A stretch of 64,000 nt of DNA from Eutreptiella sp. 'Long Island Sound 2002' (GCA_964036045.1 OZ038378.1:178746001-178810000); one strand, 5' to 3'; counted from the stretch's first letter, positions 22,031-59,499 are shown. Numbers and translations are program-made. The notes: generated from the letters alone by a model not told the origin.

Positions 22031-22621
22031 ATATGCTATCGGGGGATCAATGGTCGGTGCTGATCGACTGAATGTCCCCGCCATAGACACTTTCAGCCAT
22101 TAGTCCAGAGGTTCTCTCACAGATGCATGTGTCCCCTTCTTGGTTGGGGTGCTCCACTATTCAATGTACAACAAGTAGGTACAAGGTTTCAATCAGCGGT
22201 GCCAGCGGCAGCTGCATTTGTTATATAACCTGTGGACGGCGAACCACTAAAGATCAATACCTGTGTGTTGCTGAGCTAGATGGTGCATGAAAAACAGCCA
22301 CGCCCTCAAGCTGCGTCTGTGTTGATGTGTCGCAGTGAATCACAGGGCCGTATAGCCTGATGCACTCCTTCGGCCTAACCATACGGCTTTCTGTTCTCCT
22401 GCCTGCTGGAGGGGAAAAGGGGAGGTAGACAATCGCCGTATTACGTGCGAGCTGACAAGGCTGCATAGCTGTGTGTTTGTGGGACCATATGTCGGGTGAA
22501 GTGCCGCGTGCTTCAGTGGAACCACCCTGGGCTCCAGCATCGCTGACGATGCTATCCACTATACCACACTGCCTCCCATACTGTCTTTGTGGGAAGAAAC
22601 ATTCAAAACTTAGAAAGCAGT

Positions 22622-25600
22622 CTACTGGCTGAGGCGTCGTTTTCTCGTGTCGCTAACATCAGTGCTGTAGGCACTGTCATTGTCACTGTCGTCGTCGGCG
22701 GTGACGGTGTCAGAGTCGCTATAATCTGATATGGTACCCGACTCGTCAGAGTCAGATAAAGGCTCTAGGTCTAGTGATCTGAGGATGTCACTTGCAGTGA
22801 CGGAGGAAAAACGTACTGCTGCTGGAGATTGAAAGACAATTTTTCGTGAGACCTCAGACAGATCATGTGTTGACGTAGCTGCAAAACGTGCCTTCTTGAG
22901 AGGGGTAAACCGTGGTGGTGAAAAATCAGAAAAGGTGCTTGGTGTGTGCAGTATGGGGTGTAGTGGGCTGGAGAGGCGGCCTAGGTCCGCCAGCCGGTCT
23001 GCTTCGTTGTTGCCCTCCACTGTGACGTGGGACGGGACTTTGACCCATTTAATGGTTTTGTCTGGCTGGCTTAGTTCGCTGAGGAGTTGCTCCCAAATTT
23101 CAACATTGGACACTGGGCCGGAGGAGCCTGTCCATCCGCGCAGTTTCCAGCGCCTGGCCGCACCGCTCGCACCTAGAATTACGTAGGAAGAATCAGAACA
23201 AAAGGCATACCGCTCAGGCGGCAATAATTGAATAGCGCGGAGCACTGCAAAGAGCTCTGCTGTGTTGTTGGTTTGGCGTAAGTGCACTGGAACGTAAGCG
23301 GAGATGGACAATAAATCAGAGGAGAAAATCCCATAGCCTGCTACTCTACCAATGCCAGGGACTAACTTGGACGAGCCATCGGTGAAGACTAGCGTGTAGC
23401 CTTCGTTGGAAAGTGTGGGAAGCAACTGCTCCAGCTCTGAAGCTCGCTCTTGTTTGCGTTCCAGTCGGCGTTGAGCCTTGGCCGCCGCCGGTGGGGGCGG
23501 GGGAGGGGGGGGGGGGGGGGTGATGATGAGGGATGGGTGTGCGAGGGCTCCATGTTGCAAAGATTCAATGCCCGCAATGAAAAGTTTGATTTGATCCACA
23601 GAAATGTGTGTATAGCACCGTGCTTGTGCAAGTGAGCGCAGCACCACCAACCAGCATTTTAGAAAGAATTGGAAGGTATGACGTGCCTCCGGATGGTATT
23701 TTACAGTGCAACGGACCAACCATGAGGCATAAATAGCAGTCCAGGCAAGGATGCCAACAGGGGTTTGAAGTGAGCTGTCTGGTTCACTGTCAATCAGTCG
23801 TTGAATACCTAGGACTCCCGAACCCCAATCTGGGAAGCATTTGGCTATGGTGTCATAGGCCACTGGTAGGTACCGACAGTGTAGCAGGGAGTGCCGTACT
23901 GTCTCTAGGGAGCCGTCTAGAGGACAACAGGTTTCGAGTGGCTTCCAGTTTGCCTGTCTGTGCCCGACTGGCAGGCGTTGCCACAGTGCAGCATGGACAA
24001 AGTCTTTCAAGTCTGAGGGAAGATTGCAACGCCACCATGCTTTCCACACTTTCTGTTCTTGCCTAGGCTCAAAATCATAGGGATAAGATACATAGCTCAG
24101 GAGCTTAGTGTCAATCCATTTGACCCAGTGCGATCTGTCTGGGAGTTCTGGGTATCTGTCTGGATACGCCGGTGGCAACGGTGGCTGTGATGTAGCTAGG
24201 CGCTGGATGGCCGCCCGGTAGATGGGTTGCCAACTGGGTGCGAGCCGGGAGAAAAGGCTGTCGTCCTCCAGCAGGCTGCCCACTGTTAGGATGCCAGCTC
24301 GGATTAGCTGTGGGCAATAGTACGTTTGATTGTGCTGATTACGAAATGCATGGTGGTGCCAGAGCGGCGTGTCGTAGGCGAGCATAGAAAGGGGTGCTTG
24401 TGGAATGTGTTGCTTGAGCAACGAAAAGGCGCGGGCAGACCACGCCAGGTATGGCATGGTGTTCCACACCACGTTACTCCCCATCTGGAAAGTGAATGTA
24501 GACGTGGTGTCTAGGACGATTCCATGTTTGATTTGAAAAGGCTGGAAGCCGCTGACAATAGTTGAAGGAATGAGTGAAGAATTGTTCAGGAAACGTGCAA
24601 AAGGCGTAGAAAATTGCCAGTGTAGAAATTCCTTAGGTGCAGGCAGCGCATAGCCTCCCTGCTGTTTGGGGAGGGAGAGAATTGGTTGCGTGATGCCCCA
24701 GGAATTGAGTCGCAGAGATACGTGATAGATGAGTGTGAGTGTAGAGATAACGTTATCGTCAGCAAAGACTGCCCTGGCAGGGTGCACCAGCAGGGGGAGT
24801 ATCCAGAGCTTCAGGAGTTCTATTCGCTCCGGGAGGGACAGTTCCCATGAACGCATGGAGTAGGCTCTGCCCAGTGCCTTATTCAGTGCGAGGGAAAAGG
24901 ATTGTTCTGGGGTGACATGTCCCAGCAAGATCCCCAGATATTTTATGTCTTCTGGATAGGTATGCCCAACTGTGTGAGTGCAGCCTGCAGTTGTGGAGGC
25001 CATTCCCCTTTCAGAAGAATGGTTGACTTGCCTTTGTTCATTTTTAAGCCGGTATGTGCAGTGAAGCATGACATTTCTATCATGATCAGTGTCAAAATTG
25101 CGTGAGCTTCATCAGGCGGCAGTGTAATGATGATAAGTAAATCGTCTGCATATAAAAGAATGGAGACATGTGGTGAAATGGCAGTCAGTTTCAGAGCCAG
25201 AGGCGAAATGAGCATTGCAAACATCGAGGGGGAGAGAGGGCAGCCTTGTCTCACCCCCGATGTTGGGTTTATGGGGTAATGCTTGAAGGGTATGCCGTGT
25301 ATGACAGGTATGATCTGAGCCGTGAACAATGCAAGTAACAGTCGTGTGACATCTGCAGGCAAGGTCATCATTTCGAAAAAGGCCTGAGCATATGCATGGG
25401 TGACCGAATCGAAGGCTTTCTGAAAGTCAATAGGAACAAAACAGCCTTGCGTCATGGACGACCAAGAGTCAAACGCCTGCCAAACTGTGTTCTGGATGTA
25501 ACGACCTTTGATAAAGCCTGACTGGTGCATTGGAGTGACAGCAGAAACAAGGTCTTGCAATTGCAAAAGCAGAATAGCGGACGTCCACTTGTGGCAGCAG

Positions 25601-27420
25601 TTTTGTAGGACTAGCGGCCTGAGGTCTGCAACTCCCACACTGCCCAATGCTTTGGGGATGGGGTTGAGAATGGCCTGAGACCACTCCGGGTTCAATTCTC
25701 CTGTGTTTAAAATACGCTGATAGATGTCATGCATCAGAGGGACAAAAAACTCTCGGAAGGCTGAGTAGATGGAGGCCTGTGCTCCATCTGCACCTGGTGC
25801 AGAGTTTTTGCTGAGGCCGTCCAGTGCGGCCTCCACTAGGTCTTGCGTCGGGGAGCGTACCAGCATGCTCACCATCAGAGGCATGTTTTTGTTCGAAAAA
25901 AATTGCGATAGGTAGCGTTTGCATTCCGGGACAGGTGCACCCTCGGCTCGCATGGTTTGCTGCCAGTATTGGACTATCTCTGCGGCGAGTGCCTCTGGTT
26001 CCTGTATGATGTGTCCGAATTTGTTTCTCAAATTGTGCAACTTACGTTTGTGCTGAAAATGCTTGACAAGCCTCCAGACGTCTTGTTTCCTTCTCCGGGG
26101 ATGCAGTGTGTATGGATCGTCTAACACAGTCCTCAGCTTTTGCAGCACAATTTGTCCTGTTCTGTCTGTATTTTCTTGCTCAGCAAGTGCTGTGAGGATG
26201 GAGTAGGCGGATGACGGTGATGTAGTGCTGTAGCGTCGCGAGCGAAGCAAGTCCCAGGCACCTGGCGAGAGCTGTTGCACTGTAGAATCCATAAGGAGTG
26301 CTTGAATTTCAGAAAAACCCTGCTCTGCCCTGTGCTTTGCTTCAAAGTGGAGTGCAGAGGAGCGTATGAGGGAGAGCGCATCGGCCCAGCGTGCGTAACC
26401 TTCCGTGGGGATAGCCTCCAGTTTCACCCCAATGGCTGAAACTGTGTCGGCACGGGACAGAAACGTGGTTGGACAGCGTTTCAGCTTGTTGGTGTGACGC
26501 TTGAGAGGCGCGATGCGGGCAACAACAACCTTGTGGTCAGAGCCGCCCAAAAATGTGCAATAGTATTCAAGTAGGTTTTGAAGGTAGGAAGAAGGTAGCA
26601 AAATGCGATCAATGCGTCTCCGTCTGTCGGGCACAACGGCGCTTTCATTAGGAGAGATGTCGGGCTGTGAGGGGGCCTGAGACAGCCGTGGAAAACCCCA
26701 GGTGTAGCCTTCGAGGGGAAGGTCGTCGAGTCGACCTTCATGGAGCGCCCAATAGGCATCAATCACGTGGTGACTGCTGACAAATTCTGCCTCTGCAACA
26801 CGCGCCTTGACAGTGTCCGGGGGCTCAGACCCCAGATGTGGCGAGGCGACGTCACGAATAGGGAGCATGACGGAGTTATGGTCTGACAGAAAAATAGTGT
26901 CATCGTGCAGCCAGCCTGGCGGCAGAGCCGTCAGCTGCTCCCACTGTTGTAGGCGGATGTCTGCTTGATGATGAAAATGCGAAACCAGGAAGTTATGTAC
27001 ATTGCCATCTGGATCAGCCAGGCTTGCATGTAAAAACCGTGGATGGAAAGACCATGAGCTGATCAAGGTCCATTTTTTGTGGTATAAAAGAGCTACAGCC
27101 CCGCGGGCACGGGGGGTGTCACAGAGCTGTGAATTGCAGATGAAGCTGATGCCTTTGTCCGAAAAGCGCTGTGTTGCGGTTGCAACATCTTCTGGTGTCT
27201 GGAGATGCGGTTCTTGTATCCCCATAACCTGGATGTTGTTTCTGTGAAAGAACCTGGTGATTTCAATATGACGAGAGACCTCGGTGACGGAATCTTTAGT
27301 GAAAATACCATTGGCATTGAAAGTGCAAAATTTTGCGCCTGAAAAGGAATACGGTGGGGGGCTGTGTGCATGGGGCTTGGACAGTGGGGGGGGTGAAAGA
27401 CACGTTGAGAGCGTAGTCAT
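22622..27420 (-). CDS. LINE ORF2 (APE, RT, zinc knuckle, RNase H) with one 1-nt frameshift near 24945
   Basis: APE motifs TFNANG, IQEPH, IDRIL, SDH. RT motifs SAPGADG, QSGFIKGR, DFQKAFDSV, QGCPLSP, YADD, KYLG. Zinc knuckle CPLDGSLETVRHSLLHC. RNase H motifs FTDGS, TNNTAEL, SDSSY, VPSH..GNNEADRLA. Confidence 0.92.
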
Positions 27421-27425
27421 GGTTG

Positions 27426-29596
27426 CTAGGTGTTAGAACGTGCAGCATTGGCATAAGTGAAAGACCTGTTGTCCGAGCGGTTCTGCCGTGAGGACTGAGA
27501 ATCTTTGCGCATGCGTTGATACTCTGACATAGACACGATTGTCATTGTGATATTTTTTGATGCGTCACATAACAGTTTATTGGAAAAGTCATCAGGGAAC
27601 GCGCCCTGGATGCGCCATGCCGTACAATTAAATTTCCCCGGATTCCAGATGCTTGGGGCGACAGCTTGTGCGGGGACACCAGCGTCATTCAAGAGTTTTA
27701 GCAACTCTGCGTCATTGAAACGGATCGGTACGTTGTAAACGACCATATCCTGTGTGACGGTGGACTGCCTGGAGGAGGTGGAAGAGGTAGAGAGAGAGGA
27801 CTCCGAGTCAGAGCCGCTCAGACCGTTGAACCATTCCCCTGGTTTTTCGTTTTTCAAAAGGATGCCTGCTGCACGGAATTCGACTAGTGGGCCAGCCAGA
27901 AAGGCTGCCACGGCGTTCTCATCGCGCAGACCAAGGCGCAGTTTGTTGAAACCTGCCACCTGCAGTGGGAAAAGGGATTGATCGATAAGGTGGTCCTTAA
28001 GGACTTTGTAAACATAGGCCCAAAAGGACTTGGCATATTGCTCCTTGTGAGTTTTTTTGTAAAACAGTTCCAAAACGAGCTCACAATCCCCGTAGGGCTC
28101 TCCTTCGTAGACTGAAATGGGCATTGATGCAAAAAAGTCCAGCTTTGAAAAATCACGAATCAAATTAGCATGCTTAACCTCATCCATGTCGTAACAGAAC
28201 ACTTTGGATCTCCCTCCAGGGGAGGAGGTTGTAGGACGCACATTGACGGGACCAGGAACATTTCGACGGTTTTTTCCGGTAATTCCCAATTTCCCAAAAA
28301 TAAACGCGAGGTCATTTTCATGCACATGAATAGCCCGCGTGTTGGGCGCAGCCTCAGGGAGGGAGATGGTTTGGCGTTCCAGCGAGACTCCCCTGGTCAT
28401 GAGTCGGACAGAGTTCAGCAAGGGTTTGAGTTGTAATGATACAGACTTTTGTGTAACACTGGCAATGGCATAAAGTCTTTCTGTACCGCTGGCAGAGACA
28501 GCCGCACGAGAGAGGCGGTTGATGGAGGCGAAAGATAGGGGTAGTCGTTCATGCACTTTTTCGGACCATTGCTGGAAAGAAAAAGATTGATTTGGAAGTT
28601 CGATGAGAAAGTCAATTTGCTTCAGGGGGCCATATGAGTGAAGTTTGGAAGAGAAAATTTTAGAGAACTGTGATATCTCCGAGTCTTTAAGCGAGATGAG
28701 CAGATTCAGTTCGTTGCTAGGCAGAACAGATGGAAGCAAATCAGCCGGTATCTGATCAAGACCTTTCCAGGACTGAGGCTTACCTTCAGTGGTGAACCTT
28801 ACGGAGGACTGTAACACTGTGGGACGTGTCTGGTCCCAGCCAAAGTGTAGCATGAGCTGCGTTTGTTCATCCGTGTGCAGTGGATCTTCCTCATCCGGTT
28901 TTAGAGCGTCGGCCTGGGCCTTGCGCATTTTCTCCACTGTGTTCACGTTGTCCTGGCTCAGGCCTCCAGCCGCCTCCGTGATAGAATGTAGCAGATTTTG
29001 GGTAGACTCAGCGGAATCATCCACTGCAGTTTTAGAGCGCTTCGAGTCCCGCGTGGGGGTGTACACAATCTTGCCGATGTGCGCATTGAGCTGTTTCCTC
29101 TGGTCGCGTAAGATACGTTGTTGATTTTGTATGACGTCCTTCTGAAGCTCAAGGTATTCGACAATAGAAGTTTCGTTAGAGTTGATGAGCTGCACCAGAC
29201 TGTTTTCCGAGGTGGCAACCTGTGTCGTAAGCGTGTCCCATTGCGACTTAATTGATCTTTGGCCTTTTGCGATGCGTTGTGACTGATGGCGGTGTACTGC
29301 TGTTCAACTTCTTGTAGTTGAGAAATTAGCTCGAATAGTTGGCCACAGGCAACACCAAGTGGAGAATCTTTCTCATAGTCAAATTGTTTAGCGATCATGC
29401 GCAAAGCCAGCAGCGAGTCCGCACGAGTGCTTAGCAATGTTGATCTCGATTGTTGATTGTCAGGAACGTCAGGCAAGCCTTCAAGCTGTTTGTCCAGATC
29501 AGCGATGTGCGCACACAGTTCAACGACATTGTGCTCAGCAGAGAGTTGGAGTCCCCTGTCGACAGGGTCGTCGACTTGCATCTCAGCGTTGGACAT
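27426..29596 (-). CDS. LINE ORF1 (~720 aa; coiled-coil N-terminus, possible RRM-like C-terminus), 1-nt frameshift near 29250
   Basis: ORF-track pieces 28958-29596 and 27426-29195 join if one A is restored (DQL-K-SQWDTL). The ORF ends 5 nt before the ORF2 ATG. Confidence 0.75.
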
Positions 29597-29953
29597 TTAT
29601 TGAGAGAGGGCGGAATTGAGCCTCAATTCTTGGAGTATGATGAAGGTCTCCTCTGGGGTGTGCCAGGTGGATATTCTCCAAATCCAAAAGTAGTCGAAGG
29701 GCAGCAGAAGTTTGTAGATGGTGTATTTCAGCAAATAGTTCGCCCGTGTCGTTGTCGGGTGGAGGTAGTCAGCAACCAGGTACACCGGCTTGTAAGTCTT
29801 AACGATATCCGGGTCCAGGAAGTGCAGGAGGTGGCCTCCGATGCGGTGTGCTGCGATCTCGTGCGGCGACTGGTCTAGGACGGAAGTGGACGAGGCAGTT
29901 GCCTCGTTGCTGCTGTGTTCAGTGAGCTCAGCAGGCAGTTTGCTTTGTGACAT
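29597..29953 (-). CDS. LINE upstream ORF0, 118 aa, unknown function
   Basis: First ATG, 47 nt after the SL copy. Its TAA directly abuts the ORF1 ATG (TAAATG). It contains an aromatic/hydrophobic stretch YLLKYTIYKLLLPFDYFWIWRI. Confidence 0.65.
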   Translation of the reverse strand: MSQSKLPAELTEHSSNEATASSTSVLDQSPHEIAAHRIGGHLLHFLDPDIVKTYKPVYLVADYLHPTTTRANYLLKYTIYKLLLPFDYFWIWRISTWHTPEETFIILQELRLNSALSQ

Positions 29954-30000
29954 AATTCAATAGGCCACTGTGGCCCTTGACATTGTGCAAAGAATGTCAC

Positions 30001-30027
30001 CGAAAAAAATTGACACTCAGAAAGTGA
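30001..30027 (-). other. Spliced-leader copy at the LINE 5' end
   Basis: TCACTTTCTGAGTGTCAATTTTTTTCG versus the recalled euglenid SL ACACTTTCTGAGTGTCTATTTTTTTTCG. Confidence 0.9.
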
Positions 30028-30460
30028 ATGCTATCGGGGGGGGGGGGGGTAAAGGAAGGTGTGTGTGTGTGATATTATACTAGTTGGCCGAAGCAACTCG
30101 GGAGGCCCTTAAGGCTATAGCCTCCCTCACCGCGCCATTGTGTGGGCCTTCCAGCCCTAACGCGCATGCTGCAGCAAGGGAAGGAGAAGGAGAGGGCACC
30201 CTAATTCTTGCGCCCAGGCGTGCATCGCTTTTTAGCACTGAACATGGCAGTTGTAGTGGGCCGCTTTGTGCCCTTGGCCTTCACCGCCTTCTTTTTGGGG
30301 CGAACTTCCACCCCTAAAGAAGAGGAAGAAGAGGAGGCTGACGAGGAAGAAGAAGAGGTATTAGCATCTTTGGAAGGTGCCGAGGTCTCACTACCACTAG
30401 ACGAATCAGAATTGGCCGCAGAGCTTGCTTCCTCCTCTGGCTTCCATCCTAAATCCTAAA

Positions 30461-33400
30461 TTTTTTTTTGACTGACTCCAGAAGTTCAAAGAGTACTCAA
30501 GACTGTGCTTGGGAAAGTGGGCGTCTCCAGCATATGATACAGTGGATCCCCGCAAAGCGGGGCACATGGCAAAGACCCAGAGTTCACATGCGTATAACAG
30601 AGGGCTGTCTGATGCGGTAGGCAAAACCGCCACGCCATATGGCAAGCCTATAATGTGTAAGATTTAAGGGGGTTAAACATGCTGCATCACGTGTGTGCCA
30701 TTCCCCACAGGTCTTCGAGAGTGACAAGCTTTCGTCGCTTTGTAGGTGCCATGTCCGGTGGCGGGCGTTGGCCCAGGATGCCGGGACTTGTGCGGCAGTG
30801 GCGTTTAGGCAGAGGGGGCTCCACCCAGTGGGCCGCGCGCTCGGATGCCCACAACTGGCTCATCACCGAAAAGAGCTGGACCTTTCGGTCATGCCGCTGT
30901 TAGTGCTGGTCTGCGGAGGTGGTCCACACTGTAGCACGTCGCAGAAGGGTGTGCCAGTGCCGTGATTGCCGCACTAGATCATCTAGCACTTCGCGGTATG
31001 AAACCATTAGTGAGGCCCCGAGAACGGCACGTTGATGCAGAAACCAAGGCTGGGCCAGATACTGCATTGCCGAAGCTACGTGCCGTGCCCCTGGGTCCGC
31101 GGCTGTGGGACAAAGGCACCGGTCGACATATTTTACCGCCCATGACCTGGTGTGGTACGATTGCGGCCGGTCCCATGTGCGCGCAGCTCTATGGTGGGAC
31201 GTCTCTTGGGAGGCGCGGTCGTCCTGCCGCCGTGTTCTCTCCCGGGGCCCTGTATACCCTACTTGATTGCAGACGATAGAGTCCGTGGGGTTTGGTCGTA
31301 CAGCTCGTGGGCGCAGCTTTGTGTACCATGCCGGCACCGCTGTGGAGGGCGTGGGCGGCACCTGTGGGTCACGGGGGGGGCATGGTGAGTTGGCCGCGCA
31401 GTTGGCATACACCATGTAGGGCGTGGTACTGGTGCGAGGCCACACGCTCCCTGAGGTCTACCCGCATTGTTCGGGGGATGTGGTCCCATAGGGACTGTGG
31501 TATGAAGGCAGGAAACATGGTGTAGGTCTGCCGCTGACGCCCTGTTGCACCATTCCGTAACCGTATCTTGCCATGGTCCCCAGGTGCTAAGCCACATGTT
31601 GCGAAATGCGACTTTCCAACGCATGCAGTGGATGAGTTGTTTGTGGACAGTGGTACCGTGGTGGAGGGGACATATGGGGCATTTGGGGTTGGTATGGTCC
31701 CACGGCGCGCCCGTCCCATCCCATCGTACCTGGCCCCAAAGCCATTTAACCCAGAGCATACGTCGATCCCCGCGCATCGGCAGCCAGGATACCCAGTGCG
31801 CACCGTCAAAAGTGACAACGCGCCTCCGTTGGAGGATCCATTTCCGCGCCGGAGTGGGGGCGGGCCCGCCGCACATTGCAATATCTTCAGGGCGCCGGGG
31901 GTCGTAATCCGGCACGGGTAGGCGCGTGGCCATCTTGGCGAGCAGGTCTACTTCCCCATTGCGTCGAATTTGTTCGCGTTCTTGCGCGTTACGGGCCTCC
32001 GTCTCAAGGCGGTGGCTAGGGATCCACTCCGCGGCGACGCGTTTGTGCTGCACCTGGTCGCACACTTTGTGGCGGATGTCAGCGTCAGAACATTCGTGCG
32101 TGGGTCGGCGGTGTGCGCATTTTGTGACGGCCATGTTGTCGATGTATTGAGTGTCACCGTCAGATGCAATGGCCGCGCCGATGGCTGCTCCGTACATTTC
32201 AGCCCTGTAGGACTTTTGTGGGCCCGCCACCCGGGCGAGGATGCGAAGAGGCCCTTTTGTTACTGCTGCGCCCACCGCTTGGTATTCCGAGCCCGCAATC
32301 TGGACGGTTTGAAGGCTGCCATCGGAGTATAGGGACGTTCCGGTTGGCGGTTGCTGGTTTGAGTAGCACGGTACGCCCGCGACGTTGACAGGGTGGTATC
32401 CCGCAAGCACCGTGCCCGCTGAGGGGTCTTCGTGGTACCGGTGTGGGGCAATGTAGTGGCGCGTGTGGAGGGCATCCCCCACCTGCTCTTTGCGGGCAGA
32501 CAGGAGGACGCCGTCATCGGAGCTTTCACTGTCGATAAGGTTGGGTCCCCCGGCCGGCCGCGGCGGAAGTGCTATGTGGAGTGCAGTGCGAGCACCTAGC
32601 TGGGTGAGTATAGCCAAGTAGTTGTGAATAGGCACTGCTCGCGAGGGCAAATCTTTGCTAAGGTCGCAGCCAATGGATCCCGGACGTGAACGTAACGTGT
32701 TCTGTACCATTGTGGTGAAGCGTGCCCTGTGGGCCCAGAACAGTTGGTGCAACCCCATTCCGCCCAGTCGGTGAGGAGAAGTGACATGGAGGACGTTGTA
32801 TGATTTGTGAACGTCGACCTTATTGAGTTCCATGCCCTCCGCCATAAGCACAAACCGCAAGCACATGGAGTCCATGGCTTTGAACATTGAGTCGTTGGGG
32901 AGAAACAAGGTGCGGTACGTCCACCGTGGGATCACGATGGTGTTCAGCAGCTGCACCCGCTCGAAAGCGTTCAGTGGCAGGTATTGGTATCGCGCCAGAT
33001 CAGCTGCGGCCGTCCCCACGAAGTCATCACGTGCCTTTTGTTCCCAGGTCGGATGTGCCAGGAGGTGACCGAGGTAGTGGAAGATAGGGGGTCGCAGCGG
33101 CAATCGCGCCTCGCCCCACGTGATGGTGTCCCTGGTCGGGGACTCTCGTCGTGCCACACCCTGACGGCGGGAGGGTGGGGCCCAACGGTACACCTGTGTC
33201 TTTGAAGGGTTCGTCTTGAGGCCCAATATGGCAGACAACTGACTGACGCGCTCCAGGACGTGCTGCATCTCCCGTTGGCTCGGGGAGATGATGGCGATGT
33301 CATCGACATAGGCCAGTATGGTGCTATTGGGAAATTCCCTAGTGAGAGTCTGGTGGAAGGCCTCATACACAAGAACAAAAAGGGCTGGGGACAGGGGGCA

Positions 33401-33981
33401 CCCCTCCTTGATGCCACGGCGCAACGGGAAACGAACGTCTCCGTACACCCCCGTGCTGTGCGCGTAGATGCTAGCCACCATGTTGTAGATGCGGGCCGGG
33501 GTTCCAATCAACTGGAGTCCGTAGGTGAGGCACTCATGGGGCATGCTGGGGTAGGCTTTTGCAATGTCCAGGAGGCATACCAGCGCTCCGTCCCCGTATT
33601 GGTGTAAAAGCATCGACATGCGGAGGGCTTGTTGTGATGTGGTATAGCCTCGTCTACATCCTGCTTGGGGGTCGGAGAGCGCCGCATCGATGGGCCCTCG
33701 CAGGGTGTCCAATATGAGCCGGGCTAGAATGGAGTACATCCCAGTGGCTACGCTAATGGGCCGGTAACTGCGGGCCGCCTCAAGGGGGCCAGACTTGTAG
33801 ATCATGGCTATTCTGGCCTGCAGCCAGTGGTGCGGCACATCGCCGCTTTCCCACACATGGCGCACTGCCATTTATAGGTCCCACTGTAGTTCCCTAGGTA
33901 ACCACTGGTACAGGTGGGGCGCCACGTGGTCCATGCCTGCCGCCTTGTTCTTGGGTTGGCGTAGCGCTTTTGTGAAAGATT
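30461..33981 (-). mobile_element. 5'-truncated non-LTR retrotransposon (RT-RNase H-zinc knuckle) with poly(A) tail
   Basis: A 22-bp TSD with one mismatch, GCTTCCATCCTAAAT(C/G)CTAAAT, lies at 30440-30461 and 33982-34003. T9 at 30461-30469 is the A-tail. Confidence 0.9.
31259..33981 (-). pseudogene. Truncated LINE pol (RT + RNase H) with a stop and frameshifts
   Basis: Motifs KAAGMD, YRPIS, QAGCRRG, DIAKAYPSM, EGCPLSP, YVDD, FHYLG, YSDGS, SYRAE, IDN, WIPSH and CPICPLHHGTTVHKQLIHC. A TAA stop precedes 33871. Confidence 0.9.
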
Positions 33982-34168: not shown

Positions 34169-34724
34169 AAAGCGTGGATTGCGAGTCCCTAACCCCAAGT
34201 CAAGGGGCCATGCAACAAAGCGTGGATTGTGAGTCCCTAACCCCAACTCAAGGGGCCACGCAACAAAGCGTGGATTGTGAGTCCCTAACCCCAAGTCAAG
34301 AGGCCACGGCACAAAGCGTGGATTGCGAGTCCCTAACCCCAACTCAAGGGACCACGCAACAAAGCGTGGATTGTGAGTCCCTAACCCCAACTCAAGGGGC
34401 CACGCAACAAAGCGTGGATTGTGAGTCCCTAACCCCAAGTCAAGAGGCCACGGCACAAAGCGTGGATTGCGAGTCCCTAACCCCAACTCAAGGGACCACG
34501 CAACAAAGCGTGGATTGAGAGTCCCTAACCCCAACTCGTGGGGCCACACAACAAAGCATGGATTGCGAGTCCCTAACCCCAACTCAAGGGACCACGCAAC
34601 AAAGCGTGGATTGTGAGTCCCTAACCCCAACTCAAGGGGCCACGCAACAAAGCGTGGATTGCGAGTCCCTAACCCCAACTCAAGGGGCCACGCAACAAAG
34701 CGTGGATTGCGAGTCCCTAACCCC
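34169..34724. repeat. 48-bp minisatellite, ~11.6 copies
   Basis: Unit AAAGCGTGGATTG(C/T)GAGTCCCTAACCCCAACTCAAGGGGCCACGCAAC, with a duplicated three-unit (144-bp) block. Confidence 0.95.
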
Positions 34725-35245
34725 ATTGGCTGCCTCGGCCCTGCCTTCTTGGGGGCCCAAAAGTGGTTAGAAGTGCTACGTCACCCCTGCATTCTCGGGG
34801 GTCCCCAACAAAGGGGAGCAAAATCAGAATTGGCTGCCTCAGCCCTGCCTTCTCGGGGGCCCAAAAGTGGGCAGAAGTGCTACGTCACCCCTGCATTCTT
34901 GGGGGTCCCCAACAAAGGGGAGCAAAATCAGAATTGGCTGCCTCAGCCCTACCTTCGCGGGGGCCCAAAAGAGGGCGGAAGTGCTACGTCACACGTGCAT
35001 TCTCGGGGGTCCCCAACAAAGGGGAGCAAAATCAGAATTGGCTGCCTCAGCCCTGCCTTCGCGGGGGCCCAAAAGTGGGCGGAAGTGCTACGTCACCCCT
35101 GCATTCTCGGGGGTCCCCAACAAAGGGGACAAAATCAGAAGTGGCTACCTCACCCCTGCCTTCTCAGGGGCCCACAAGTGGGCGGAAGTGCTACGTAACC
35201 CTTGCAATCTTAGGGGTCCCCAGCAAAGGGGACTAAATCAAAAGT
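34725..35245. repeat. 104-bp satellite, ~5 copies
   Basis: ATTGGCTGCCTC recurs at 34725, 34829 and onward. The unit shares GGGGGTCCCCAAC and CAAAATCAG with the 84-bp satellite. Confidence 0.9.
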
Positions 35246-36273
35246 GGCTGCATTGGGGGCAAGGACAAAACTGTGGATATGCAGCCCAAAATGACACCAC
35301 CAAAAAAATTTCCCACGAATGGTGTGCTTGCATCGAAAAACCCCCTTAAGACCCCCCAACAAACCATTTTGAAAAGGGGGGGGGTCCGAAACCCCTCACG
35401 GTATCGGATTTCTAAGAACCCCCCCCCCCCCGGGAACCCATACAATTCATCTGCTGCACTCTCCTCTCCCCCACCGTCTCCATCACTCGTCCCATCACTC
35501 ATCATCTCACATGAAAACTGCGATGCCCGCCCCTTTTCCCGCAACTGTGACACACTTGGCCGCTTGCACTTGCGTGCGTCACTGACTTCTGTGCTACAGT
35601 CAGACCAATCAGTCCCTCCCCCAAGTCAGACCCCTGCGATACCCGTCGCTGGATCGGTCTGGATTCTGCCCCCCCCCCCCCCCCCCCACACCTCGCGACA
35701 ATTCGTCGCTCCTCACTTCTGAGCTGCTCATTTCCACTGGGCCCAGGGACAACCAGATCGGTCCCAGACCCGGGCTGAGCCGCAGGGATGGGTCCCCCTC
35801 CCCACGCTCCCCCGGCACCAGGCACCTTTCCACCATCCCCTCCCCCACCATCGTCTGTTCATCCTGCACCCCCAAAGCATATCACTTGCCCCATTAAACG
35901 GCAACGCAACTGCTGCATGCGGTTTTGCATACATCAGCAGATGTTTCTGGACCATGTACAGGCCTTCACCTGTTGCGTCAGGCTGGATTCCTCCGTGCTG
36001 CTGATCGTGTTTGATGGTCAAGCAGAAGAGCGGCAGGCACCTGGCGTGTCGCATTATTACAAAAGTTACAATCGCAAATCAGCAGCCTTTAATTTGAGTG
36101 TCTTTGCGAACGGGCAGCGGGTCGCCGACTGACAGTCGTTCTCGGCAATAAATGTTTGTGTTTCATTGGCAGCTTGCAAAAAAAGGCAGCGAGTTCCCGT
36201 AGTGTGATCACAGACATGGGACAGTGGGACAGGAAATCGCCATCCGCTTGAGGGTGTTTCAGATGAATCAGCA

Positions 36274-37374
36274 TCACCCGCAAGGACATGGGTCGGTCAT
36301 AACGACCGTCACAATTGCGCGGCATATCACCTTTCCCTTTTTGTTGCGGACGTTTGCGCGTACCACGGCCATATTTGCAACCGATTTCGAAATCATCTTG
36401 CACTCCACCCCAACCTGCTGTCCAGGTGAAGCTGGGGTCATATAATGTACGTCAACTTGGTGGATTCTGTCTGGCTGTTTGTCGTGCAGCATCTCATCGT
36501 GGGTTACAGCAGCAAGAGCTGCAGTGCATATGACAGACCCCAAAGCGCCTCCGTGGACTGCACCGAGAATATTGACGTGCTGATAGTCAAACGTGTGGTG
36601 CAGCGTGAAAAAGTCGGGAGGGCTGCTATCCGTCAGTTGCAGGGCTGGCATCCATTTATCATACCCGACCAATGCCACATCCGCCAAACCAATCTGCCTC
36701 AAATATTCACTGGGATCTTTGCAAACCTTATCCAGGGCCGCGGGCTGTGGGGCCGCCTCCTGTGCCTTCTCCTTGGCTTCCACTCTCTTTGCAAGCCATC
36801 CCAGCAATCCCACCAACACCTTCGTGCCAGGCCCAGGAAAGCGGTTGATCAACCCCCAACCAATCGTTCCGACAAGGCCCAGGCCCACGAACTTCATATG
36901 CGTGCCATGCGCCACCAGAGCGCTCGACTTGGGCCCCATGAGGTAGAAATTGGCTTCGGTCACAGCCAGAGTGCGCCCAGTCTTCACCACTTTCGCTTCA
37001 ATCTCAACTGTACTGCCCAACGGCACTGGGGCGAACTGAGACAATGATAACGACACGCTCACCCCTCCGTAACTGCCTGCAGCAGCCAAAGCCAATGTCG
37101 TAAGCTGATCCAGTAATGTTATGCTTGCTCCACTGTGCAAGTACTGGTAGCAGTCCAGAAGGCTCTCGGTGATCTTCACAGAGAACCGCACAACCCCGCT
37201 CTCACTGACCTCCATGGGCGGGACATCGGGCGACGTCTTATCCCAACCAACCCGAAACATGGACGTTCGAACCCGGGCCATTGCGACCTCAGGCCTCAGG
37301 CGTACAACACCCGCTGACTGAAGCCAGCGGTACACCGCAAAGCAGACAAACAGGGCAATGACGAACGCCCACAT
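36274..37374 (-). CDS. Intronless double hot-dog acyl-CoA thioesterase (PaaI/ACOT13-like) with N-terminal hydrophobic anchor, 366 aa; probable retrogene
   Basis: Two hot-dog motifs, YQYLHSGASITLLDQLT and LGAVHGGALGSVICTA, plus VVKTGRTLAVTEA. An SL copy ends 6 nt upstream of the ATG. Confidence 0.85.
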   Translation of the reverse strand: MWAFVIALFVCFAVYRWLQSAGVVRLRPEVAMARVRTSMFRVGWDKTSPDVPPMEVSESGVVRFSVKITESLLDCYQYLHSGASITLLDQLTTLALAAAGSYGGVSVSLSLSQFAPVPLGSTVEIEAKVVKTGRTLAVTEANFYLMGPKSSALVAHGTHMKFVGLGLVGTIGWGLINRFPGPGTKVLVGLLGWLAKRVEAKEKAQEAAPQPAALDKVCKDPSEYLRQIGLADVALVGYDKWMPALQLTDSSPPDFFTLHHTFDYQHVNILGAVHGGALGSVICTAALAAVTHDEMLHDKQPDRIHQVDVHYMTPASPGQQVGVECKMISKSVANMAVVRANVRNKKGKVICRAIVTVVMTDPCPCG

Positions 37375-37380
37375 TGATGC

Positions 37381-37408
37381 CAAAAAAAAATAGACACTCA
37401 GAAAGTGA
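37381..37408 (-). other. Spliced-leader relic upstream of the thioesterase
   Basis: TCACTTTCTGAGTGTCTATTTTTTTTTG, differing from the recalled 28-nt SL only at the first and penultimate bases. Confidence 0.92.
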
Positions 37409-40099
37409 AGGAGCGCAGAGGGTGTGTGGGGAAGGGGGGAGGGGCTGTGTTTTCCGCCCAATTGTCACCCTTGTCCAGTTCCATCAAACGAAACTACCAA
37501 GGCTCTGAGAGCAAGGGTCCGAAACTGTTGTATATGTGAGGTTGCTTAATGCCGCAAATTGATTACTGTACACTTGAGGGACACTGTGTGTGGACCAAGA
37601 GGGGCAACGCCAATATTCAGCTTGCCTACTGTCTTAACTTGGGACTCTGCAAGCCAATATTTAATGGTGATCTCACGGAACACAAGGGCGATCTCCTGGT
37701 TTGTGGGTGGGTGGGGGGATGTAGCCCTCACTCGCACATTACAAGTATGTGTGAAAAATGTAACTCGTGTACAAAACAAGCGCTGGTGGAAGCCCGGCCC
37801 GCCCACCCGCGACAAGACCCGGCGGGAGAGTGGTACTGAGTGTTAGTCACTTGCACGTCACATGCCCAAAGCCATCGATACAAGTGTACCCTTGGCGTCT
37901 TCATTAGAAGCACCATGGATATAGTTTAATTGAATCATATCTTATTGTTTCAGTAACAATAGTCATCAAAATGGACAGCAAAGAATGCATAATTCATAGC
38001 TCTTGTTCATTGTGATGCAGATTGTGTTAGATCATACTTTTCTTCCACATATTGATTTTAGTACACATTATATTCTTTTTCAGAATCGAAAAATAAAATG
38101 ACGAAATGAAGGGAGCAACCAACATCACCACATGCTACTACACCTGCTAAAAAAAATAGTTTCTCCGTTTGTGCGATCCATCAAGAAAACAATACAAACT
38201 AAGGAAACATAATATATCTTGCAGCAAATGCAATCAAAAAGAAATTAAAAAAAAAAAGACAACATAAAATAATCCATGGCATTAGGCTTGTGACTAGGCT
38301 TGGGAAGGAGGAGCATAGCGAGTCCTTCCCAAGCCTAGAAACACATGAAGTCTCCAAGATAACCGCTGCAGTTTTCGATGCAACCTTGAAACCACCGACG
38401 CAAAAAAAGTTGGGTGTTTCTTCTACCAAAGCACGCAAAGAACAAAACTCACCTGCAATGCCTGTCGGAGCAAGACATAGATCATGTTTGTTCCACTGCT
38501 CGAGGCTCGAGGATAGAACATTGCTCGTTGTAGAAAGGTATAGGTTTCATTGGCACGGTTTCGTTCAAAATTGGTAGCCAAAAAAATTGACCCTGAACGG
38601 ATTTTTTTCCAAGAACAGCAAGCGTCCGTTTCTTCTTGACTCCAACAATTGTTGAAGCCCTTAGTCCACTGCTTCTATTGGTTTTCGTTTCGTGCCAAAC
38701 GGAACCATTGGTTTGTTGGACCGAGGTTCATTCCCAGTCCCATGGTTTCGGTAGGTGACTGCTACCAACACACGTGCAAAACATCCAACTTGCAAAATAC
38801 CTCAATTATAGCACTTGAGGAAAGCAAACCACCACCCATTCTGAGGTCTGTCGTTGTACACAACCGTAACCGCTTTGGTTCGTGATGAATTCATACCTAA
38901 CCGCAGGAATGCTTCGTTGAACAGTCACTGCAAAAAATATCAAAACGGTCGCTCACAGCGGCGCAAAAAAAGTACCTTTTGCCGTAATTTTTGCGCCGAA
39001 TATTTAGAGCTGCCAAATACCACCCCCCGGTCATTCTCTTCTACATCTCTCAACGATCGTAATGAGCAACTTTTCGAGGCCTAGCTCAACGACATGTCCA
39101 AATGCCGCCCAAAATACGCGACCACGCAACTTGAAAAAAGTGCCAAATGTCAAACCTCCAACGCAAGAAACGGTTGCATTTTATAACCTCGCGGACCCAA
39201 ATACCAACCCGACACGTGCTACACACCACGAAGGACCTTGATAAAAAAGATTTGACGGAAAGTGTATCCGGGGCTCCTCGCAGTACCACTTGGGGGGAGA
39301 CACATGACGGCTGAAAAACGCACTCTGTTTTTAGCACTGACAGCATGCTCCAAAACCCTCCACTTGACGCCCCCCGTTCTATGACCATACAGACACAAGC
39401 TCAAAGCCACATAGTACATATCGAAGGGCAACAGTAGGGCCTCGATTTGGTCGGAGGGCAGCCGCGTAACTCAAGTTCGTCTTCGCGCAGCGCCAAATTC
39501 CGTACCGACCACGATCGGAAAAATGCGATTTTTCGCGCAAATCGTTCTCACTGAAACGGCCGTATCTTGGCGCCACCGCGTCGTTTGGAGCTAAATTTTT
39601 TTTCCGCGACCCCGGGAGCTGTCCGGAGATGATGATGCTTGAATCAGGGCCAGATGAGCCACAGGCGCGGCGCCATATCTGTCGCCAGATGACCCGCGTT
39701 TCGAAAATTGACGTTTTTTCGCAACTTGAACCCTTCGCCAAACTGCGAAATCGGATCGGTTTTTCGAAATTCCAAATGCCATGTGGATCGTTTTGCGATG
39801 CCGTTCACAAAAATGCAGTCGAAATCAGATTTCGTGAAATCGCGTTTTTCGCGATTTTTTAAACGGATCTTCGGATTCTGGCCAGTAAAAAAAAAAGTGC
39901 CAAAATAACATTGTAGGGCCCGACCTCCCATCCACAAATGTACCTTCCGTTCGTCCGAAACTTCGTCCGTTGCCAACAGTACGGCAGCACGAATCTGGCG
40001 GGATAATCAGCGGGGTCAGCTTTACAGCTGAGCGTCTCTGGCGGCAGCGGAGCCCCTCCCCCACGGCTGGACAGCAGACAGCGGGCCTTACGGCCCCGG

Positions 40100-46349: not shown

Positions 46350-47300
46350 GCCCATTCCATCAGCCTACTCCAGGGATCAGCCGGGTTGAGCCCCGATTGA
46401 ACCCACCACAGGTGCACAGACTGCGTACGCTGGAGCAACCAAAAAAAAGTCACTAGAGAACGCGCTGCTGCTGTACGGACAGGCCTATGCTAATTTTACA
46501 GGCAGCCAAAATTTGCAAAACAGCTGAATTGTCGCCTACGAAGTTCACCACAGGCCAGGATAGCTTATGACAGAGCCGAAGGCCAAACTCGAATGCACTC
46601 AGCTGGGCTATTTGCTGGTTGCTACACATTGCCTGCTGCAGTCCTGTCCTGGCACCCAACTTGAGGACCCAGGTCGCATACCGCCACCGATTCATATCCT
46701 TGGCGCCGTCAAAAAACAGGAAGAAACCCCAATCTCGGGGGCGGGGGGGGGGATGCACAACCCTCCACCCAAGCAAAGGGAAACTCAATGTTGTTGCCAA
46801 AGCATCTCCCTCTCACAAACCCCTTTTTTTCTGCTGGAACTACGTAGGTGACTAGATAATCCAATGCCAGCTTAATGACTCCAGTGTGCCATTCTATTTT
46901 ACAGTTCACAACAGTAATTGGGTGCACGTTCTCCACCGTCGGTGGACCTGCACTAACTCAAGTGTAGGCTGGCACCATAGCTTAGCCCTTGCACCTCGCC
47001 AACGGTGTGGCATATTCGCAATGTAGGCAGCCTGATGTTGACGTACATAAAAGGGCAAGCGACGCATGGGGCAGCCACCCAGGCTCCCAAATCACATGCG
47101 CCCAGGCAGAGGCAAGAAAAGGCCCCACGCCCCCACGCTGGACGACACAACCGCAGCAGGTGGCCCAATAATTTCAACCGCTGGCGGCGTGTACACGGTC
47201 CCACACTGAGCCGCAACCACCACGCCACAACTGCACACGGGCCCTTGTGATCGATCTCCGCAGTATCCTATTCCAGATCAAAATGTCGACCAATCCACCG
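46350..47300 (-). pseudogene. Decayed RT thumb + RNase H of a tyrosine-recombinase retrotransposon (DIRS/Ngaro/VIPER-like)
   Basis: Across frames: VQPTPVLRWIGRHFDL, CTRRQRLKLLGHLLRLCRPAWGRGAF, FFDGA, SNQQIAQL, VGDNSAV and LWWVQSGLNPADPWSR. Confidence 0.7.
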
Positions 47301-47677
47301 CAACACAGGAGTGGGTTGAACAGCGTGTCCGGTGTTCAAAGCTGGGCCCTCAAAGCATTTTCACCTGCACACATGGGATGCAAAACGCTGCAAATCAAGT
47401 AACTAGGCTCCTCAAAATCAAGATTTGGGCCTTGAAAATGAAGTCTTAAAGTAGGTAAGAAAGGGGGGGTCGGAAAACAGCATGCCTTCGGTGGGTAGGC
47501 ACATGCTGTGTGCATACGCCCTGCTGCAGTGCCGATTCATATGGATAGGCACCAGCAGCATTCTGACACCTCCATTCTTATTGGATCCCCCCTGCATCTG
47601 TCCCAACTCCCCTTCGCCACAACCTACGACACAAAGGCCAAGGACAACGGGGCCGTGGTGGTGGAAGCAAGTCTCCA

Positions 47678-48367
47678 GGGGGCGTGTGTGCACAGCGCAG
47701 GCACAGCGCGCACATGACAGGAAGAAATTGGGGGGTTTTGCTACAATTGGCAATAGTCTTGCCTATACAAACCATACTACACCCCCACAACGTTGGACAG
47801 CCTGATGTTTGCAAAGGCGGAGCACAAGAATACTGCAACAGAACTTGGGCAGTGACTCAGTGTCGCCAAGACCAGGCGAACCGGCAGTAGTATGGACGGG
47901 TGCGGTAACTTCCTCTCCGCAAGCATGCGGGACCCCACACAATCACAGACCCGCAACCAAAACCCAGGAAGAATTGCTGCAACACAGTTGGGCCAGCCCT
48001 GTGACACGCGGGCAGGCCGGTTTCAAAAGGGAGGGCAGCTCCACGGTGAGGCACTCCTGCAGGGACCTGTTCCACCACCAGCGAAGGGGGTGGGCGGGCG
48101 GAGAAGACAGAAAAATTGCCTAAGTATGGAAGTGCAAACAGAAGTTGAAAAAGTCGAAAAAGATACCACGAACCTATAGGAAAGGATGCACAACAACACA
48201 CACCAATGCAGTAGAAATGAGGCCAAAGCATGCATGCAACTCATATAAATGCGTAACAAGGCTCATTGTTACGGGTACTCGGCACTACTATGCAGGTTAG
48301 GCATGGTCCTGTACCAATTTTGTGCACAGCGCACGCACAGCGCGGGCACAGCACGCAAAACGCCCCC
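47678..48367. mobile_element. G5-family non-autonomous element, TSD CCA
   Basis: CCA|GGGGGCGT...ACGCCCCC|CCA, with GCACAGCGC repeats at both ends. Confidence 0.75.
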
Positions 48368-48678
48368 CCAGACACCTAGACGACACAGAAAACAGTGTGT
48401 CACCAACAACCGGCTTACCCAAAGTGTCCCAAAAGTTGGCCCGGATCTCCTGTTGTTAACGAAGCGTGCAACGAAAGCCTCGCCCCACCTTGGGGTCCAG
48501 CACGTCTCTGGCAGTGTATCTGGTACAACCCAAGGCCATAGTGTGCTTCGTAAGGTGGCCATGGGCGGCCAGAGCCAACCAGAAAATCCAAAACGCAGTC
48601 AAAGATTTCTATAGATCGACGGAGATATAGATATTTCACGACTGTGCGTCCTCGTGCCTCCCTGCCTCAGAGCTCCCC

Positions 48679-49803
48679 TCACTGTGCCCTGGCCCCTATG
48701 CGCCGCACAGTCTGTGCCGCCGCTGCCACATTGTTCACACACAAAGCATCCACTCCGGCTCTAAGTGCACTTTGGACATCTGTCTGATTGTCCACGGAGT
48801 GGCCTTTCCACCAAAGCATGACCTGCAAACGCTGCGATTGCAGCGCTTGGACGAAGGCGAATGTAGAGGGCCATGGGGTCTGCAAAGTGTTGAAGTCATA
48901 CCGGACGTGGACCCAAGTAGCTGAATACCTTGTGGCCCATTGTATGATGTTCTGGGTTTGCGGAGTTGGTCGACCATCGTCATTGTACAACAGCCCTAGA
49001 TCAAATGGCAGCCAATCCCTCGCCAGGCCACACATGCCGTTCAATAATGGTTGCAGTAGATCCTCCGGCTTATACCCGTTGGGACAGCGGTCAGGGTTGC
49101 GTGTAGCTTGATGGCGCAAAATGGTGCACCCACTCTCTGGCGCAAGCTGGAACGTGGATACACGGGAAATGCAGGCGGGGTATGCCCGTGCTAAGCGGGC
49201 CAACTCACATGCTAACTGGGGCTTGGAGCCTTTCATTTCCACCTGAAGTCGTACTCGGCCACACAGTTGCTGCATTATATCACGAAAAAGTGGCAACTGG
49301 CCCCACCTTGTCGCAGAAGAGGAATTGGTTTGGTGCATGTACTCCCTTATTGCAGCCTCTTGTGCTTCTTCTGTCAGAGCTGCATACTCTTCAGCTCGGG
49401 CGAGCACTCTGCTGATCACACCCCGTGCAGAAGAATCACGAGTTACATGCCCAGCCCATGGGGCGCGCAGCATCAGGGGTTCCTGGAAGCGTTTCAGGGA
49501 AGCCTGCTCCAACTGGAAATCCGGAGCAGCCACCACCGTTTCGGCGCATCTTCCTCCCGAATTGCCTCCTCCACCATGGACCACGACAACTTCCCCATCT
49601 GCAGTCATCCAGACGTCCAGTTCCACTTCAGCTACTCCAGACCTGATGGCTGCCTCAAAAGCGGCGATGGTGTTCTCAGGCACAAGAGCCTCACAGCCCG
49701 GCACTGAGCACCCAGACCCACGGTGCCCCACAATCTGCACCCCAAAGATTTGGGGCAACAGGACTACCAGCAGCCGCAGAAACTGCAGCCATGCGACCAG
49801 CAT
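48679..49803 (-). CDS. Intronless glycerophosphodiester phosphodiesterase (GDPD) with signal peptide, 374 aa; probable retrogene
   Basis: Motifs IVGHRG, PENTIAAF, EVELDVWMTADGEVVVVH and VEMKG. N-terminus MLVAWLQFLRLLVVLLPQIFG is signal-peptide-like. Confidence 0.88.
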   Translation of the reverse strand: MLVAWLQFLRLLVVLLPQIFGVQIVGHRGSGCSVPGCEALVPENTIAAFEAAIRSGVAEVELDVWMTADGEVVVVHGGGGNSGGRCAETVVAAPDFQLEQASLKRFQEPLMLRAPWAGHVTRDSSARGVISRVLARAEEYAALTEEAQEAAIREYMHQTNSSSATRWGQLPLFRDIMQQLCGRVRLQVEMKGSKPQLACELARLARAYPACISRVSTFQLAPESGCTILRHQATRNPDRCPNGYKPEDLLQPLLNGMCGLARDWLPFDLGLLYNDDGRPTPQTQNIIQWATRYSATWVHVRYDFNTLQTPWPSTFAFVQALQSQRLQVMLWWKGHSVDNQTDVQSALRAGVDALCVNNVAAAAQTVRRIGARAQ

Positions 49804-49835
49804 TACCAACGGAGGCCAGAGGTCATTGAAAGCCT

Positions 49836-49859
49836 GGAAAAAAAAAAGACACTGAGACA
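49836..49859 (-). other. Degenerate spliced-leader relic upstream of GDPD
   Basis: TGTCTCAGTGTCTTTTTTTTTTCC matches the SL 3' 24-mer at 20/24 positions without gaps and is followed by AG. Confidence 0.7.
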
Positions 49860-50269
49860 ATTAGTGGGGAGCAAGTCTCACTAAAACACTTTCGGAACCC
49901 ATGCCACAATGAATCATCAGGCTACTACTGGTTGATGGATTGCTACTGATCATCTTGTTGATCGTTGATGACATTGATGCACCGACATCGCAGCGTAATG
50001 CATCCGGAAAGGACGCTACGCAGGTCATCGCTACCCGATTACATGGGAGGCTCTCACAGTACTGTCTCCTGCTGGAATTCCTCCGCGAGGGGGTCTCCCT
50101 CCCACTACCTAACCCCAATCCATTGCTCCCTCCGGAACTAGTACGCGCGGGACATTTGAGGCGTCCTTTCATCTTTCCACATCTGTGTCCCTGCGCCATA
50201 GTTGGAGCAAAGTTCTTGTATCGGGTGAGGAGTATATCTTTGTAGAGCCCGAAAAAATGTAGTAGTCTT

Positions 50270-57434: not shown

Positions 57435-57438
57435 CTGA

Positions 57439-57440
<2 letters not shown>

Positions 57441-57483: not shown

Positions 57484-57485
<2 letters not shown>

Positions 57486-59246: not shown

Positions 59247-59499
<253 letters not shown>

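Follow-up and report, generated by a model that had tools for sequence, protein, structure and literature searches.

How do copies of the spliced leader (SL) of euglenid mRNAs come to be encoded in genomic DNA, immediately in front of open reading frames (ORFs)? This question is raised by a 64-kb stretch of the genome of Eutreptiella sp. 'Long Island Sound 2002', referred to below as the window, to whose positions all coordinates relate. Three SL copies lie in it, one at the head of a retrotransposon without long terminal repeats (a non-LTR retrotransposon), i.e., a long interspersed nuclear element (LINE), one in front of an acyl-CoA thioesterase gene, and one in front of a gene of the GDPD family (Table 1). 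A preliminary description of the window had proposed LINE-driven recycling of trans-spliced mRNAs. Taken as a whole, the evidence is best explained if the three DNA-encoded copies are relics from SL-capped RNAs that were reverse-transcribed all the way to the 5' end, a reading to which we assign a probability of about 0.72.

Results

Three SL copies in the window

The published euglenid SL is ACACUUUCUGAGUGUCUAUUUUUUUUCG, identical in Eutreptiella and Euglena gracilis (PMC3621762); its 24-nt core is also present in two Euglena papers. The motif in the window is this same SL, and it also heads SL-RNA genes from metagenomes, which answers the concern, raised in the preliminary description, that the organism's real SL might differ from it. 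A 21-nt core of the SL matched the window at 30003-30023 (one mismatch), 37384-37404 (no mismatch) and 49839-49859 (three mismatches), all on the minus strand, and there was no match in 100 dinucleotide shuffles of the window. When the SL was slid along both strands, the alignment scores were 25 at the LINE, 22 at the thioesterase gene and 17 at the GDPD gene, the next best being 13 (mean 5.6, standard deviation 1.5). Core matching, shuffles and slid alignment thus bear out the three minus-strand copies 5' of ORFs that had been claimed. Two are near-perfect and one is decayed; an uninterrupted ORF begins just downstream of each, and chance would be expected to produce none of them.

The preliminary description had also asked whether SL-like sequences are enriched in front of intronless ORFs. 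In about 310 kb of genome (the window plus 11 loci), there were 12 SL hits, and each of them precedes an ORF in sense, with 6-90 nt between it and the start.

A fourth SL-derived fragment, TTTCTGAGTGTTTAT, was observed at 3469-3483 on the minus strand, with 14 of 15 positions matching (chance expectation about 0.006). It lacks a T-run, no ORF follows it, and it is probably the remnant of a decayed retrocopy.

The SL of the LINE lies inside a target-site duplication

The LINE in the window, a member of what we call family A, begins with T+CACTTTCTGAG and finishes with ...CCATTGAT, without poly(A). Because exact copies of CCCCCGATAGCAT are found at 30040-30028 and at 22045-22033, the element comprises 22046-30027 and the SL lies inside the duplication; the SL therefore belonged to the RNA that was copied. 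That it is part of the LINE insert is established to the full extent that sequence allows. A reverse transcriptase (RT) ORF, the lack of LTRs, the occurrence of both truncated and full-length copies, and duplications of variable length at unrelated sites mark 22046-30027 as a non-LTR retrotransposon; it entered a C-run by target-primed reverse transcription.

The LINE ORFs had been described as intact, which was not the case: the copy in the window is full-length, but is frameshifted by two private deletions (Table 1). No endonuclease domain was recognized in ORF2: the 429-450 residues that precede the RT matched nothing in Pfam or among PDB sequences, and a single-sequence AlphaFold model of this N-terminal part, with a predicted local distance difference test score (pLDDT) of 38.8, was too poor for searching. 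No second family A copy was found in the window, and an Rfam scan of the window revealed no RNA gene and no ribozyme.

Table 1. Features of the window, and target-site duplications of the other family A copies
Feature	Position or length	Strand	Remarks
Non-LTR retrotransposon, family A, full-length copy	22046..30027	-	7,982 bp; RVT_1, zf-RVT and RNase_H domains; duplication on both sides
DNA-encoded SL, first bases of LINE	30001..30027	-	30001-30026 plus preceding T at 30027; 2 positions off canonical SL
5' copy of 13-bp target-site duplication CCCCCGATAGCAT	30028..30040	-	closes a 14-C run
3' copy of 13-bp target-site duplication CCCCCGATAGCAT	22033..22045	-	exact; directly behind ...CCATTGAT
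LINE ORF0	29597..29953	-	118 aa, no known domain; ATG 48 nt downstream of SL
LINE ORF1	27426..29596	-	723 aa in intact copies L004 and L006; window copy split by private 1-nt deletion near 29250
LINE ORF2	22622..27420	-	1,597 aa in L008; RT, zf-RVT and RNase H; window copy split by private 1-nt deletion near 24944
SL relic of thioesterase gene, T + 27 nt	37381..37408	-	26/27 canonical (37381-37407; penultimate C is T, at 37382); 6 nt before ATG
Acyl-CoA thioesterase ORF, intronless	36274..37374	-	366 codons; two hotdog domains; ATG at 37374; uninterrupted
C-rich block	37428..37444	-	20 nt upstream of thioesterase relic; resembles C-run where LINE copies inserted
Decayed SL relic of GDPD gene	49836..49866	-	CACT, then 19/21 core, ending in T-run + CCAG
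GDPD-family ORF, intronless	48679..49803	-	374 aa; GDPD domain; uninterrupted; relic ~33 nt before ATG
RT ORF of unrelated retroelement	31259..33871	-	~23% amino-acid identity to family A RT; without SL; outside the system
L003 target-site duplication	83 bp		running into SL by microhomology
L004 target-site duplication	~11 bp		
L005 target-site duplication	14 bp		
L006 target-site duplication			none found
L008 target-site duplication	16 bp		
L009 target-site duplication	15 bp		
L010 target-site duplication	6-10 bp		
L001 target-site duplication	14 bp		5'-truncated copy

Clusters comprising 67 and 15 members were returned by protein searches with ORF2 and ORF1; they derive from a single ENA assembly, in which the window's own proteins also occur. 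We compared ten family A loci and one locus of a second family, B (L015), from the same assembly. Seven of these further family A loci are full-length (L003, L004, L005, L006, L008, L009 and L010), while L001, L002 and L007 are truncated. All seven open with (N)CACTTTCTGAG, the SL being joined to a common body, GTGACATTC. The LINE in the window is 99.2-99.3% identical to four other copies, and the mutual identity of 99.2-99.4% among the five suggests a recent burst. In every duplication CCCC(C) comes first, directly behind ...CCATTGAT, and a run of 9-16 C is closed by the 5' copy, indicating that family A targets C-runs.

Insertion at C-runs without poly(A) was common to families A and B. In the family B copy (L015), the SL also comes first, inside a duplication of its own (~20 bp), and the body that follows is a different one, ATCTCTTATTGC, with an ATG soon after; the representative of the family B cluster is 44% identical to family A in ORF2. 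An SL relic also precedes a host gene at one of the family A loci: at L004:17682-18861 a relic with one mismatch lies 88 nt before an intronless ORF for a 354-aa OTU protease. This relic abuts the end of a 128-bp repeat, which follows the family A 3' end in two places (L001 and L004).

One copy departs from the single-SL pattern. At L009:9551-9600 the full SL is followed by an exact 18-nt repeat of its 3' part, AGTGTCTATTTTTTTTCG, with the AG kept, and 16 extra bases stand between the duplication and the SL. This repeat could be due to slippage, a template jump or unusual re-splicing.

The thioesterase gene

With its SL, a leader of 6 nt, an ATG and an intronless ORF, the thioesterase gene looks like a mature trans-spliced mRNA returned to DNA, and that it is a retrocopy of such an mRNA is shown in part. 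The relic is preceded by T, as in most LINE copies, and its internal AG (37397-37396), which comes after a long pyrimidine-rich stretch, is a candidate new acceptor. A C-rich block like that upstream of the relic (Table 1) occurs within 45 nt upstream at only 0.8% of window positions; this 5' flank is the only direct hint that the C-run-targeting machinery of the LINEs may have made the thioesterase copy.

DNA-like read contigs covered 35669-37407 and 37382-37775 with no differences, at an even depth of 27-30 in runs X1 and X3, across genic and unique intergenic DNA. These contigs join the relic both to the ORF and to the unique upstream flank, and the junctions therefore exist in raw genomic reads.

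The surroundings of the gene are repetitive. Downstream, 34169-35251 consists of two tandem satellites with units of ~48 nt and ~104 nt, the same units being dispersed in L004, L008 and L010. From about 300 nt upstream of the relic, at 37715-39950, lies highly repeated, AT-rich DNA with a read depth of 10-300 times that of single-copy sequence. We also considered the thioesterase gene as a chimeric retrogene with a LINE tail, which was not seen, the downstream sequence being dispersed satellite and the unrelated RT.

The base before the SL

Real SL-RNA genes have an A in front of CAC. In eight retrocopies (30027, 37408, L005, L006, L008, L009, L010 and L015) it was T in six, G in one and A in one, and in L004 and the OTU relic it was C, which is ambiguous. 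The non-A base may be the footprint of a modified cap-adjacent nucleotide that was misread by the reverse transcriptase.

The GDPD gene

The core of the third copy, TCTCAGTGTCTTTTTTTTTTC (49857-49837), retains 19 of 21 SL positions, with CCCCACT before it and CAG after it. The in-frame start codon of the GDPD ORF is the ATG at 49803-49801, which corrects an earlier reading. The first ATG (49826) opens a 7-codon upstream ORF (49801-49826, minus strand) that ends in TAATG, its stop codon overlapping the GDPD start codon.

Such a motif might be an ordinary polypyrimidine tract with an AG acceptor that resembles the SL by chance, which would leave only two real SL copies in the window. It contains three mismatches in 21 bases, half of the match being T-run; it ends in CCAG like a normal acceptor; and no duplication or poly(A) was found. 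However, its score of 17 was far above the window background, none of the shuffles reached three mismatches or fewer, an intronless ORF in the same orientation starts about 33 nt downstream of it, and it is preceded by CCCCACT, like the starts of other copies. We consider a chance resemblance unlikely, and the GDPD motif is probably a real but old relic. The GDPD gene would then be an older retrocopy of the same kind as the thioesterase gene, its relic having decayed into a T-run and AG that may now act as a trans-splice acceptor.

SL-RNA genes and the question of artifacts

Real euglenid SL-RNA genes (L011-L014) were recovered from metagenome contigs by an exact-match scan. They read A and CACTTTC...CG, then GTATA(C/T)A(T/C)TCGTT; L011 and L014 also have an Sm-like site, AATTTTTG, and are tandem and near TTAGGG repeats. 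In these two contigs, the genes lie in repeats of ~782 bp, each copy being followed by TTAGGG telomere-like repeats. The search for SL-RNA genes in sequence collections yielded only the genes of other euglenids, none in viral contigs, and one contaminant contig in a bacterial metagenome-assembled genome (MAG). The latter, a 988-bp contig in a Pontimonas MAG, represents eukaryotic contamination of a bacterial bin; it carries the euglenid SL (L016:792-816) followed by non-intron sequence, and this SL is probably another relic.

Could the copies in the window be true SL-RNA genes, or assembly artifacts derived from cDNA or transcript reads? Both possibilities had been raised in the preliminary description. 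The GT intron, Sm site and tandem array of SL-RNA genes were not found at the window copies, which are followed by ORFs instead; none of them continues with the SL-RNA intron and Sm site, and the SL is joined to three different bodies. In the thioesterase, GDPD and OTU genes and in family B, the SL is followed by mutually unrelated sequences, none of which is the SL-RNA intron. The SL-RNAs folded into the expected stem-loops, whereas the LINE heads folded no better than shuffles (family A, z = -0.09), and the Rfam scan had found no RNA gene in the window. Contamination with cDNA is contradicted by the duplications flanking the LINE copies and by the genomic-depth contigs that cross both sides of the thioesterase relic, and there were no poly(A) tails. 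Nothing but the SL itself speaks for an origin of the copies as artifacts or as SL-RNA genes, which is thus highly improbable.

Transcription and fresh trans-splicing

In the estuary metatranscriptomes X4 and X5, RNA contigs covered only 36113-37266, i.e., coding sequence and about 160 nt of 3' untranslated region, with no differences. The thioesterase gene is therefore transcribed; the contigs stop at 37266, short of the relic. The preliminary description had gone further, holding that the process yields functional genes: for the thioesterase gene transcription has now been shown, and beyond this the retrogenes may be functional.

An RNA contig from run X5, belonging to a different gene (loose ends at 37381 and 37412), read ...TTTTTTTCG, then 13 nt, a full SL and the mRNA body. 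This tandem leader indicates that genes with a relic can be trans-spliced anew, the fresh SL being placed upstream of the old one. In three metatranscriptomes, words taken from the 5' 2 kb of family A were present with shares of 0.05-0.21, so that the sign of transcription of family A is a weak one.

Genes without an SL copy

Two further genes on the minus strand served for comparison. Homology to DUF676 is split between ORFs at 12329-12883 and 10661-11284, and homology to LRR_6 is split over 56073-57617, 59184-60005 and 61650-61940; no SL copy was found near either gene in the window. The preliminary description had called the two SL-less genes intron-containing, which the split homology makes plausible, and the lack of a nearby SL agrees with what it stated.

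Discussion

A pathway consistent with these results would begin with euglenid mRNAs receiving the 28-nt SL by trans-splicing. The LINE's own mRNA would be trans-spliced like any other, and this mRNA would be the template for retrotransposition. The enzymes of the C-run-targeting LINEs may also have copied host mRNAs, and read-through transcription, together with fresh trans-splicing to an AG that lies within the relic or shortly upstream of it, might account for the expression of new copies, which have no promoter of their own. Of the LINE-driven recycling originally proposed, the copying of SL-capped RNAs to the 5' end, including that of the LINE itself, stands, and the use of the LINE machinery for the host retrogenes is put forward as a plausible extension.

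Several observations weigh against this pathway. At the thioesterase and GDPD genes, no target-site duplication, poly(A) or LINE tail was detected by k-mers, local alignment or fuzzy search in the 5-12 kb downstream, nothing rising above shuffled controls. No intron-containing parent of the thioesterase gene was found either, the homologue search giving only the window's own model and a look-up of the exact product being empty. The link from LINE to host retrogenes depends on one flank feature, the C-rich block upstream of the thioesterase relic. Family A has no poly(A) and its duplications start in C-runs, which suggests priming on its own 3' end and makes mobilization of polyadenylated mRNAs less straightforward. 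None of the family A copies examined has all three ORFs intact, for which assembly indels are a possible cause.

Re-expression of the LINE presents a further difficulty. Seven of the eight family A copies have exactly one SL at the same junction, although the relic in the DNA has no AG there, and a simple cycle of copying, re-splicing and copying does not explain this. We reject re-splicing at the relic's own AG as a general route for family A, because extra SL sequence was present in only one copy of the eight (L009), whose 18-nt repeat keeps the AG and is thus not the product expected from splicing at that AG. The uniform single-SL junction points either to a few master loci with a true acceptor or initiation at the relic.

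The last point against the pathway concerns the sequence GTGACATTCTTTGC that follows the SL of family A (29987-30000), which agrees at 12 of 15 positions with the intron start GTATACATTCGTTGC of L012 and L013 (anchored p ~4e-4). The head of family A might accordingly be an inherited SL RNA or SL-RNA-gene module and not a product of trans-splicing, acquired as a template-switch chimera (as in U6/L1) or through a master copy in an SL-RNA gene (as in SLACS); in that case it might act as a promoter, internal or borrowed, and so set the transcript's 5' end. Family A also continues with GT after the SL, like the SL-RNA donor site, ACATTC can pair with the SL's GAGTGT in the manner of stem I in real SL RNAs, and a weak collinear alignment to L011 extends over ~60 nt, taking in the Sm-site region (p ~0.002). 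An inherited module would, moreover, explain the one exact single-SL junction in seven of eight copies, L009 with its extra 18 nt being the other. However, unanchored nhmmer and blastn searches with the introns against the 310 kb did not recover the LINE heads, and the introns compared were those of other euglenids' SL-RNA genes, not this organism's own. Family A has no intact Sm site, its ORF0 starts 48 nt after the SL, and its head is no more stably folded than expected (z = -0.09). In family B an unrelated body without GT follows the SL, and the host retrogenes indicate that trans-spliced mRNAs have been copied to their 5' ends in this genome. An inherited module is thus decidedly improbable as the source of the family A head, and we retain the copying of trans-spliced LINE mRNA as the more probable one.

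A more speculative idea, to which we give little credence, is that the life cycle of SL-headed euglenid LINEs is a distinct one. The SL encoded in their DNA, possibly together with an SL-RNA-like stretch behind it, might serve as a portable start module that sets the 5' end of the transcript, or insertion at C-runs might supply a polypyrimidine tract and acceptor, so that daughter copies would again give SL-capped, translatable RNA without a promoter of their own, and the same machinery would keep seeding expressible, SL-tagged retrogenes.

Among trypanosomatids, SLACS, CZAR and CRE are site-specific LINEs that are inserted into SL-RNA genes and have the SL in their flanks. Like them, the elements described here are Euglenozoan non-LTR elements physically tied to SL sequence; unlike them, they have the whole SL inside the duplication, occupy C-run sites and are accompanied by no remainder of an SL-RNA gene. 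Since the flanks of the LINE copies are mutually unrelated and share only the C-run, with the SL inside the duplication, insertion of the SLACS type (SLACS is named in PMC10161547) is excluded. According to work on L1Tc and ingi (PMC1874656, PMC3185411), these elements have the Pr77 internal promoter and an HDV-like (hepatitis delta virus-like) ribozyme, and L1Tc gives unspliced transcripts from its own promoter. They resemble the elements described here in being Euglenozoan LINEs with RT and RNase H and duplications of ~12-16 bp, and face the same 5'-end problem under trans-splicing, but they differ in that ours start with the SL, lack poly(A), target C-runs and contain no Rfam ribozyme. In mammals, processed pseudogenes made by L1 and U6/L1 chimeras show that LINE enzymes copy cellular RNAs, and that template switching can put a small nuclear RNA at the LINE 5' end (PMC11838501). 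By contrast, there is here no poly(A) or A-rich target, only the 27-28-nt SL exon is present, and the LINEs are full-length rather than truncated.

The closest precedent is the 'mRNA recycling' that yields SL-relic retrogenes in dinoflagellates, where the mechanism is called unknown (PMC6050394, PMC5585692, PMC12014239). In both cases intronless genes have a DNA-encoded SL directly in front of them, which marks a mature mRNA that was reverse-transcribed; a fresh SL and a relic occur together in RNA, here in a contig from another gene; and the process is recurrent. The arrangement by which dinoflagellate relics are known, a sense SL directly upstream of coding sequence, is seen at the thioesterase gene (26/27 positions, 6 nt) and the GDPD gene (19/21 positions, ~33 nt). 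The differences are that the lineage is Euglenozoa, with a different SL, that stacked relics are rare here (one of eight family A copies), and that retrotransposons carry the SL inside their duplications, providing a concrete candidate source of reverse transcriptase. In the literature searched we found no report of SL relics or retrocopies in euglenids, only dinoflagellate work, and neither Euglena genome paper discusses them.

The system in the window is, then, a euglenid counterpart of dinoflagellate mRNA recycling, to which it adds retrotransposons whose exact target-site duplications enclose the same SL tag. No natural label of RNA-mediated gene duplication is cleaner than SL relics. Their use has so far been confined to dinoflagellates, in which one can still but guess where the reverse transcriptase comes from. 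With the same label on host genes and on retrotransposons, the candidate enzyme source, its preference for C-runs and its products can be studied together, and the label gives a simple rule by which retrogenes can be found in gigabase-sized euglenid genomes. A concrete and testable puzzle arises as well, namely how a LINE headed by a tag that is normally attached after transcription comes to be expressed again.

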